Shown in pieces: positions 15,395 to 22,917 of a stretch of 36,125 bases of DNA (positions are counted from its first letter, which is position 1; the number at the start of each line of letters is the position of its first letter). The notes beneath the pieces are model-generated. The model had not been told where the DNA came from. It made no database searches and saw only the letters and a list, made by a program, of their open reading frames with translations. The DNA is from Octopus bimaculoides. Taxonomy: Eukaryota. The stretch covers positions 136,295,156-136,331,280 of the forward strand of contig NC_068984.1 of NCBI RefSeq assembly GCF_001194135.2, given 5' to 3'. The translations under genes and the position numbers were made by a program.

Positions 15395-15705
15395 GTGTGT
15401 GTGTGTGTAAGTATGCATGTATGTATTTATATATATATANNNNNNNNNNNNNNNNNNNNNNNNNNNNNNNNNNNNNNNNNNNNNNNNNNNNNNNNNNNNN
15501 NNNNNNNNNNNNNNNNNNNNNNNNNNNNNNNNNNNNNNNNNNNNNNNNNNNNNNNNNNNNNNNNNNNNNNNNNNNNNNNNNNNNNNNNNNNNNNNNNNNN
15601 NNNNNNNNNNNNNNNNNNNNNNNNNNNNNNNNNNNNNNNNNNNNNNNNNNNNNNNNNNNNNNNNNNNATATATATATATATATATACGTACATACATACG
15701 TACAT

Positions 15706-15756
<51 letters not shown>

Positions 15757-16855: not shown

Positions 16856-17064
16856 ATATTTGATGTGATAATAATCCTTGGGACGAAAGACACAAGGCAT
16901 AGAATTGTCCTAGAATTGAATAATCAAGTACCTGTAGGCATGGAGAACCACGTTGTGTGGAAACAATTGTAGTGATTAAAAAATAAATGTCCAGCCGTAC
17001 CCCTTCTTATTGACTTCAATTTTTTTTCAATTATATATATAAAATCTAACCGAAAACTGCGAGG

Positions 17065-17160
17065 AGTACGTTAGTGTAACGGTCGCACGCTATGTATTCG
17101 CACGCGAGTACATAGCGATGTGGGTTCGAGTCCCATGCGTACAGCAAACCCTACTTTTTT
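17065..17160 (+). ncRNA. tRNA-like element with an extended anticodon hairpin and a Pol III terminator
   Basis: Hand-folded cloverleaf: acceptor AGTACGT/GCGTACA (6 of 7 pairs), D stem GTGT/GCAC, anticodon stem CTATG/CATAG around a 16-nt loop, variable loop CGAT, T arm GTGGG-TTCGAGT-CCCAT. TTTTTT follows at 17155-17160. No normal anticodon can be assigned. Confidence 0.65.
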
Positions 17161-17430
17161 CCGTCGAGGGATTATATGCTCCAATATTAGACTATGTACC
17201 GTGGTCAATGCACGGTGATAGCTTATAATATATTTTTATTTTCAATATTATTATTATTATCATTATTTACAGATTGTAAAATTCGGCACTGCTTAATAAA
17301 TAATCGCTGAAAACGCACAGAAAGTTTGTTCACAAAAAAATAACATTATGAGAATGTGCGTGTGGGAGAACGTGTGTGGTGTGTGAGAGAGAGAGAGAGA
17401 GAGAGAGNNNNNNNNNNNNNNNCGTGTGTG

Positions 17431-17834: not shown

Positions 17835-18045
17835 AGGCGGTGAGCTGGTACAATCGTTAGCTGACCGGGGAAAATTCTTAGCTCCATTTCGCCTGTGTTT
17901 ATGTTCAAATTCTGTCGAAGTCGAACTTGCCATTTATCTTTGGATTTCGATAAAATAAATAACAGCTGAGCACTGTAGTCGACGAAATCGACTCATAACT
18001 TCCCCAGATATGGCTAACGTTGTGCCAAAATTTGAAGCCAATAAT
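17835..18045 (+). mobile_element. SINE family B, diverged
   Basis: AGGCGGTGAGCTGGTACAATCGTTAGC head, TTCAAATTCTGTCGAAGTCGA, and TTGTGCCAAAATTTGAA tail. Confidence 0.8.
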
Positions 18046-20915: not shown

Positions 20916-21163
20916 TCCTGAAGGTCTAGTAATATAGATTAGGAAATTGAGAAATTTATTAGTTGTAAATGCTTTACATGAATATGAATAAGAGGAGTTT
21001 TACATAAATATGAATAAAATGTATATTTAAATAAGAAAAAAACTAAAATAGAATAGTATCGCTCTTTACCTTCAGGCAAACACTTAAATCTTTTCAGACC
21101 TCATGACGTCAATAAATAAAGAGAGTAAAACTGAAGATCTCCCATATTTTATATATTGGAATT

Positions 21164-21625
21164 CAGTGATGAATCGTAAGAGGCACAGTCTAGCAATTTT
21201 ACCATATTCTATTGTCTCGCCTATCCAGTGTATCCCTGTTCGACAATGGATTCTGATGGAGGTCACAGAGGAAATGGGCTTATTTGGCTCGAACAGACTA
21301 TAATAGTCGTTGTATTGTTTAATACAGAAAAACGGAAGGAACGGTTTCTACGAAGAGAGAAAACTAGATTTTCAACCATACCTTATTGTATAATGACACT
21401 CAGTGAGGAATCTTAAGAAGTACAACGTCGCTGTTTTGACGTATTCTACTGTCCCCCTTACCCAGTGTTTCCCTGTTCGGCTATGGATTCCGGTGGGGGA
21501 CACAGAAGAAATGGTTCTATTTGATCCGATCAGACTACAATAGTTGTTGTATTGTTTAATACAAAAGTTGGCAAGGAACTGCTTCTACGAAGGACGAAAA
21601 CAAGATTTCCAAAATCCGACAACAC
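21164..21625. repeat. Diverged two-unit tandem duplication, 237-bp period
   Basis: Units start CAGTGATGAATC (21164) and CAGTGAGGAATC (21401). By hand, the core aligns without gaps at about 30 mismatches in about 148 nt. Confidence 0.9.
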
Positions 21626-22035: not shown

Positions 22036-22693
22036 ACGACAGCAAGACAAACAATAACAACTACAGCGGTCCCTGGAGTTACGTTGACAAACGTCTGCCT
22101 ATACTACGACATCAAGAATATGCACTTATCAGATATTTCTTAAATTTAACAGCAAAAAGACATACAAAGTAACAGAAACATGAAACGCAAAATATGTCGC
22201 TTTCACGTGGACCATGATTCTGTACAATCCTTCCATTAACACCCAAAAATTAATAGAGAAATCGAAATTTCAAGGGCCGTAGGATACACGAAATCTTGCA
22301 TATACATCTAAAACGCATACAGCCTACATTCACCAACTCCAGCTGCTTGTGCCGCCGTTGCAAGACAAGCATAAGGAACACAGATTCACAGCAAGTCTGT
22401 TACACAAATACACAGCAACTGTTGTAACATCAATAGCCTCACTATAGCTTCGGGCCCAGTATTAGTTTTCACGCCATGAAAAAATGCAGAGGGAAAAAGA
22501 ACTAATGTTGCCTGATCAAACACTTGCCCGTCTTCGCTGTGGCTCCTCTGACAAAATCTAAGGGTGAACAGGAATAGTGGGGATAGAGGAGATGGTAGAA
22601 TATGGCAAAACTGCTACGATGTACTTCATAGGATTCAATACAGCATATCGGTGAGTAGGGTATAGCTCCCATGGAGGGCAATAAATTATAGTA

Positions 22694-22917
22694 GAGGCGC
22701 ATGGCTTAGTGGCTAGGGTGTCGGATTCGTGAGCGTAAGATAGTGGTTTCGATTCCTAGACCGAACAACGCGTATTTTTTAGCAAAACACTTCATTCCAC
22801 TCAGCTGACAAAAATGAGTAACATGGCGTCCCATCCACGTGGAGAATTTATATCCAACGAAACCGGAAAACCAGTCACTGAGAGTTGGATTGATTCGAGA
22901 AGGTAATTTTACTTTAC
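22694..22917 (+). mobile_element. tRNA-derived SINE, family D
   Basis: GAGGCGCATGGCTTAGTGG (A box) and GGTTTCGATTCCT (B box), followed by AGCAAAACACTTCAT...CACTCAGCTGACAAAAATGAGTA. Confidence 0.8.

Follow-up and report, generated by a model that had tools for sequence, protein, structure and literature searches.

A tRNA-like element with a palindromic anticodon arm in an octopus genome, most likely a damaged tRNA gene copy

Introduction

When a stretch of DNA folds into a tRNA cloverleaf and carries promoter boxes and a terminator, and the anticodon loop is replaced by a long hairpin, is it a new kind of RNA, a piece of a repeat family or a tRNA gene gone wrong? We addressed this question computationally for one such element in a 36,125-nt stretch of the Octopus bimaculoides genome (hereafter, the window), which belongs to a draft assembly, is ~65% A+T, and contains 3,346 N, many gaps and several SINE-like families. 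The stems, A and B boxes, 16-nt loop and T6 run listed in a first-pass annotation of this DNA were all found where that annotation had placed them (Table 1). The analysis described below points to a tRNA gene copy that has suffered damage as the most likely reading, and not to a novel type of RNA.

Table 1. Coordinates of the element, its parts and its putative transcription signals, numbered along the window.
Feature	Position	Strand	Remarks
tRNA-like body, acceptor 5' end to discriminator	17065..17144	+	80 nt; RF00005 over the full model 1-71; AGTACGT TA GTGT AACGGTC GCAC G CTATG TATTCGCACGCGAGTA CATAG CGAT GTGGG TTCGAGT CCCAT GCGTACA G
Acceptor stem	17065-17071 / 17137-17143	+	6/7 pairs, A1.A72 mismatched
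A-box-like TAGTGTAACGG	17072..17082	+	tRNA positions 8-19; the containing 17-mer is unique in the window at <=3 mismatches
D stem	17074-17077 / 17085-17088	+	paired
Near-perfect palindrome CGCTATGTATTCGC-AC-GCGAGTACATAGCG	17088..17117	+	inverted repeat I3, 93% complementary
Anticodon stem	CTATG 17090-17094 / CATAG 17111-17115	+	5 bp
16-nt segment TATTCGCACGCGAGTA replacing the 7-nt anticodon loop	17095..17110	+	16 nt facing the 7 loop positions of the consensus in the Rfam alignment
Variable loop CGAT	17116-17119	+
T stem	17120-17124 / 17132-17136	+	paired
B box GGTTCGAGTCC, T stem and loop	17123..17133	+	sole exact match in the window
Discriminator G	17144	+
T6 terminator-like run	17155..17160	+	10 nt (CAAACCCTAC) past the discriminator
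TATA-like run TATATATATAAAA	17032..17044	+	21-33 nt before the start of the tRNA-like body

Results

A single tRNA match that default searches skip

The first-pass annotation had described the locus as tRNA-like and proposed a covariance score as a check. With lax filters, and only with these, the Rfam tRNA model (RF00005) aligned end to end to the element with a score of 30.9 bits, above the gathering score of 29 (E = 1.2e-4 in a 401-nt search and 0.01 in a search of the whole window against all 4227 families). Together with the pairs of the cloverleaf, this score above the gathering score bears out the tRNA-like character. The element is the sole RF00005 match in the 36-kb window, with no other match reaching 24.9 bits. 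In contrast, the Rfam search of the whole window with default filters at the gathering threshold reported no match, the element included, and ARAGORN run with default settings over the whole window found zero tRNAs; it detected the element solely in intron mode. Standard annotation would therefore miss this locus. Families such as vault, Y and other Pol III RNAs yielded no Rfam match in 16900-17300 at E <= 10.

Relaxed searches also returned background. Lowering the ARAGORN threshold to 80% without intron mode produced 15 candidates in the window, and those read back (2019-2094, 8674-8752 and 27280-27353) were rejected as microsatellite, AT-rich or SINE sequence. Whole-window Rfam searching in E-value mode gave one tRNA match and dozens of microsatellite 'miRNA' false positives. 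Indeed, (TG)n, (TA)n and (GA)n microsatellites adjoin nearly every N gap (e.g. 1580-1655, 8226-8294, 15663-15733 and 25690-25756), and these account for the dozens of sub-threshold mir-297, mir-466 and mir-3149 false positives.

A script check of the listed stem pairs of the body found standard pairs throughout. The nucleotides that make tertiary contacts in tRNAs, i.e. U8, A14, G18 G19, T54 T55 C56 and A58, are present, and the R15:Y48 contact, as read from the sequence, is possible as A:T. Position 21 is a C instead of A, a residue that is near-invariant in tRNAs. This substitution, the A1.A72 mismatch and a score that ordinary tRNAs exceed by far reveal mild decay of the body.

The D arm and variable loop had been likened to those of tRNA-Gln, a resemblance that proved unspecific: comparison of the D region and the variable-plus-T region with human tRNAs, which can serve as a lead only, gave about equal matches to tRNA-Gln (27/39), tRNA-Val-TAC (30/39) and tRNA-Lys (30/39). 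Two further ideas on ancestry, namely that a tRNA-Val anticodon stem survives as a relic in the hairpin tip TTCGC/GCGAG and that the ancestral loop was a Glu-type TAYTCGC, were dropped as unsupported.

Pol III promoter boxes are followed by a terminator

The element displays the sequence pattern of a type 2 Pol III gene, i.e. A and B boxes at their tRNA positions, 40 nt apart, and then a T run. This pattern with an immediate terminator had been pointed out in the first-pass annotation and stands. No T4 occurs within 17065-17144, and with 33 runs of at least six T in 32.8 kb, the probability of finding one within 20 nt is ~0.02. On these sequence features, the element is probably read by RNA polymerase III. 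The TATA-like run is weak evidence for a possible upstream Pol III element and carries no weight here, because such sites are abundant throughout the window (P ~0.22 for TATAWAW in a 20-nt slot).

The element lacks a second copy in the window and the traits of a SINE

We next consider whether the element could be one copy of an unrecognised multi-copy family, be it a tRNA-derived SINE, another mobile element or an amplified tRNA-like family, with the hairpin as a family trait. The window is SINE-dense, and cephalopod genomes hold thousands of tRNA-derived loci (PMC6962438). In addition, a weak direct repeat (17020-17036 / 17235-17251, 14/17 positions matching) bounds a 215-nt unit around the element and is the sole candidate for a target-site duplication; this repeat is AT-rich and possibly due to chance. 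No second copy of the D arm, the B box or the hairpin exists in the 36-kb window at up to 3 mismatches, as opposed to 4 copies each for other SINE families, and the flanks (16860-17330) are unique within the window. Neither an A-rich nor a simple-repeat tail was found up to 17330, and the T6 run located 10 nt past the tRNA part would halt a SINE transcript. We place the element outside the SINEs because a terminator follows its head and a tail is absent; its own T6, the lack of an internal T4, the unique flanks and the missing body and tail are gene-like rather than SINE-like traits. Membership of a multi-copy family is thus an unlikely reading, albeit one to be taken seriously.

The SINE heads of the window had also been contrasted with the element in the first-pass annotation, a distinction that holds for the two heads searched singly (the GGTGGCGAGCTGGCAGAATCGTTA head and 34400-34660), neither of which gave an Rfam tRNA match at E <= 10. 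The first of these heads (GGTGGCGAGCTGGCAGAATCGTTA...), dissimilar to the element and located 200 nt upstream, belongs to a SINE-like family with the core GGTCGATAAATTAAGTACCAGT and at least five copies (17928-17997, 26333-26402, 26773-26842, 27649-27718 and a minus-strand copy ending near 16857).

Other repeats populate the window. One family of ~110 nt or more (D18) occurs at 4617-4727, 28731-28841, 34405-34515 and 35437-35547, with 61-85% identity to the reference copy at 34405-34515. Another repeat, at 8850-9090 and 28940-29110, has the translated motif LREIQ.D.ECDKAG in common on the minus strand and is adjoined by a tRNA-like SINE head (8670-8760) that ARAGORN sees at low threshold only. 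A tandem duplication with a 227-nt unit (D19; 21149-21375 / 21386-21612) shows 77% identity between its units, and similar translations suggest a related piece near 22560-22750.

Searches of prokaryotic, viral, metagenome and protein collections returned no relatives. A 24-mer from the hairpin does not occur in either the prokaryotic genome collection or the viral one. Scanning metagenomes for the D-arm...T-arm pattern retrieved three bacterial or phage tRNA arrays, which were discarded as ordinary, unrelated tRNA-Lys and tRNA-Gly genes with normal arm lengths. On two ~2-kb metagenome contigs, L001 (200-1978) and L002 (52-1058), 17 and 10 tRNA genes, respectively, are tightly packed into phage-like arrays unrelated to the element. 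Neither the six-frame translation of the element nor the neighbouring ORFs have relatives in a collection of 5.8 billion proteins, a negative that weighs little against a mobile family because the collection seems not to contain such cephalopod ORFs. Exact look-up of five local ORFs gave no record, and none of the ORFs of the window is exon-like in appearance. A full-text literature search with the sequences of the element and of a local SINE found no paper.

The anticodon arm is a continuous palindromic helix

The 16 nt that occupy the place of the anticodon loop pair with themselves, generating an anticodon helix of 11 bp, or 13 bp with two outer pairs, that is capped by CACG. Five of these 13 pairs correspond to the canonical anticodon stem, six form within the 16-nt segment, and two are external; one of the latter is a Watson-Crick 26:44 pair, and the other uses the last D-stem nucleotide, in competition with the last D-stem pair. 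A stem of 13-14 bp had been announced in the first-pass annotation, and we retain the lower figure because a 14th pair would leave a 2-nt loop. The hairpin folds with -18.2 kcal/mol (z = -5.06), an energy that none of 200 shuffled sequences equalled, and shuffling of the 16-nt segment restored the in-register 6-bp pairing in 0.29% of trials. In the ensemble, pair probabilities along the palindrome are ~1.0, with 0.95-1.0 for the six inner pairs, and no bulge interrupts the helix.

In the DNA, the two arms match at 13/14 positions. The lone difference reads as a U.G pair on the plus strand and as an A.C mismatch on the minus strand, which renders the plus-strand hairpin more stable than that of the minus strand (-18.2 vs -14.3 kcal/mol). 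This difference is only weakly informative, since it stems from one event and every second transition would have had the same effect. Downstream of the element, the 8-mer CTATGTAC (17192-17199) is the reverse complement of GTACATAG in the 3' arm of the hairpin (17108-17115), and a small hairpin, CCGTG-GTCAATG-CACGG, follows directly at 17199-17215; the 8-mer match may be due to chance or may be a trace of the origin of the palindrome.

Folding of the whole body assigned -16.7 kcal/mol to the cloverleaf with an open loop, -28.4 kcal/mol to the cloverleaf with the six-pair extension, and -32.2 kcal/mol when the 26:44 pair was also included. The minimum-energy fold, at -33.3 kcal/mol, lies 1.1 kcal/mol below the last of these; it keeps the acceptor stem, whereas the D and T strands become part of a bulged hairpin of 18 bp. 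Tertiary contacts, which folding models of this type ignore, usually tip the balance towards the L shape, and we regard both folds as plausible.

These features could be those of a functional, selected tRNA-shaped non-coding RNA, a Pol III product that RNase P and RNase Z would trim and in which the long-helix arm would be the working part, serving as a protein scaffold, a small-RNA precursor or a TFIIIC/Pol III chromatin element. Its promoter boxes and terminator are intact, pairing is kept in all four stems and is complete along the extension, and the difference between the arms preserves pairing on the transcribed strand only. Precedents do exist among tRNA-derived and tRNA-linked regulatory RNAs (PMC4695841; PMC3482243). 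Nonetheless, we deem this reading rather improbable: the element is single-copy in the window, 13 bp is well below typical Dicer substrates, the body has the small defects A1.A72 and C21, and a young palindrome formed in one step would account for the perfect pairing without selection. Slightly more doubtful is the version in which it is a conserved and expressed cephalopod RNA. Its acceptor/T-arm half would then provide the Pol III promoter and the RNase P/Z handle, and with its anticodon arm rebuilt into a helix of 11-13 bp and a CACG tetraloop, the RNA would have a role other than translation, such as that of a protein-binding scaffold, a precursor of small RNAs or a boundary element.

No removal of nucleotides restores a usable anticodon loop

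A decoding tRNA has a 7-nt loop with U33 and a purine at 37; the element has 16 self-paired nucleotides in its place. With the stem CTATG/CATAG, taking out any 9 consecutive nucleotides puts A or C, and never U, at position 33, and an intron at the canonical place between 37 and 38 would give the loop UAUUCGA, with A33. In intron mode, ARAGORN proposed a tRNA-Ala(cgc) with a 5-nt intron and the loop UUCGCAG, which does have U33 and A37, at the cost of a shifted anticodon stem and a 3-nt linker separating it from the D stem. The 3:70 pair is U-A, and the alanine mark G3:U70 is absent. No eukaryotic nuclear tRNA is known to have an intron as short as 5 or 9 nt. In eukaryotes, tRNA introns separate positions 37 and 38, and their cleavage requires that the intron pair with the anticodon and that the splice site be left unpaired (PMC10485636); in the element, the helix is continuous and neither splice site is bulged. 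Since no deletion restores a usable loop and no splicing bulge exists, the element, judged from its sequence and pairing, cannot decode as it stands, in agreement with the first-pass annotation. Its anticodon-loop feature sets it outside the decoding tRNAs, and its intron placement and splice-site geometry set it outside the intron-containing pre-tRNAs.

A working tRNA gene with a very short intron, either 9 nt at 37/38 to yield UUC (Glu) or the 5 nt of the ARAGORN solution to yield CGC (Ala), is accordingly hard to sustain. Although U33 and A37 are available in the Ala loop, and introns of real pre-tRNAs do pair with the anticodon loop and lengthen the arm (PMC10485636), A33 in the one version, the shifted stem, linker nucleotides and U-A pair in the other, the enclosed splice sites, the length of the would-be intron and the low covariance score make it very improbable. 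We give scarcely any credence to the palindrome being an assembly or sequencing artefact in an ordinary tRNA gene: the assembly is a gapped draft, with the nearest gap 250 nt from the element, but the element sits within continuous, non-repetitive sequence, its arms differ at one position, unlike those of a fold-back artefact, and removing the extra bases yields no normal anticodon loop.

Discussion

A probable tRNA gene copy disabled by a palindrome

What, then, is this locus? Our preferred answer, which we rate somewhat above even, is a solitary tRNA-gene derivative, functionally a tRNA pseudogene, that has kept the tRNA body, the A and B boxes and the T-run terminator, and in which a palindrome has replaced the anticodon loop. 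The first-pass annotation remains sound in its reading of the element as tRNA-like, equipped with Pol III features, unable to decode and distinct from SINEs, and is not specifically supported in its assignment to tRNA-Gln. Its two proposals for the nature of the element, a structured ncRNA or the head of an unrecognised repeat family, are here considered the less likely readings. That a tRNA gene copy was disabled by one palindromic mutation is a reading that it did not contain, and one that fits everything seen here.

The palindrome may have formed in one step, when a replication template switch or a snap-back copied the 5' arm as its reverse complement. Template switching is documented as a one-step source of perfect stems in RNA genes (PMC8794818). 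A single transition between the arms implies that the palindrome is either young or constrained. With its boxes, terminator and acceptor/T-arm half intact, the element may still be transcribed and trimmed: Pol III would generate a ~100-nt precursor, and RNase P and RNase Z, for which the acceptor/T-arm half makes processing conceivable, would trim it to ~80 nt. Such processing is not assured, because the non-cloverleaf fold is lower by 1.1 kcal/mol. The resulting RNA would be unspliced, probably uncharged and non-decoding, and the element itself is most likely neutral.

The prior also favours this ordinary explanation, since tRNA-derived loci are so numerous in cephalopods; in the giant squid, ~17,000 have been counted, ~2,500-3,200 of them tRNA-Val-like (PMC6962438). 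Two counterpoints deserve mention. The stems of the element are better preserved than those of many pseudogenes, and the U.G on the plus strand keeps pairing, as selection on an RNA would, a weak argument given that half of all transitions have the same outcome.

As it stands, the element is one more oddly mutated tRNA-derived locus among thousands, and its importance is small. It does show that default Rfam filters and default ARAGORN overlook a locus scoring above the tRNA cut-off. Were the element conserved and expressed, it would represent a natural tRNA scaffold displaying a helix, of relevance to the field of tRNA-derived regulatory RNAs.

Comparison with known systems

Several tRNA-derived Pol III transcripts, such as the 5' domain of BC1/ID RNA and the tRNA-Ile-derived miR-1983, have an extended hairpin that competes with or replaces the cloverleaf. 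RNAs of this type are conserved, expressed, and partly multi-copy or Dicer-processed. The element, whose computed minimum-energy fold is likewise an extended hairpin (18 bp, bulged), resembles them in idea only, and its helix is shorter than theirs; miR-1983 is mentioned in PMC4695841. It likewise falls short of a microRNA precursor, for which Dicer demands ~20 bp or more, with a helix of 13 bp and an alternative fold of 18 bp that is bulged. In the TMERs of murine gammaherpesvirus 68 (PMC3482243), a hairpin owes its promoter and its processing handle to a tRNA-like Pol III unit, again a likeness in idea only: TMER hairpins lie after the tRNA-like part and are cut by tRNase Z, whereas the hairpin of the element is the anticodon arm itself.

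Cephalopods also have tRNA-derived SINEs, the Ceph-SINEs named in PMC4824008, with which the element has in common a tRNA-related Pol III promoter region and a SINE-rich genome. SINEs have a body and a tail and no terminator right after the head; the element shows the opposite arrangement and has no second copy in the window. Intron-containing pre-tRNAs are similar in that the extra anticodon-loop nucleotides pair and lengthen the arm coaxially (PMC10485636), but the element has neither a valid loop at 37/38 nor unpaired splice sites.

The closest class is that of the tRNA pseudogenes ('pseudo/undetermined' in tRNAscan-SE), with which the element shares a low covariance score, A and B boxes, a defective anticodon loop and small defects at conserved positions. 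It departs from them in that a clean 9-nt gain has produced a perfect helix, unlike random decay, and in that the terminator is kept. We file it with these pseudogene-class tRNA-derived loci, among which it is probably ordinary. For its proposed origin, the apt parallel is provided by template-switch hairpins (Monttinen and Loytynoja 2022, PMC8794818), in which an adjacent reverse-complement copy creates a perfect stem in an RNA gene; the element is a candidate example of such a stem, made in a single mutational step inside a structured RNA gene.
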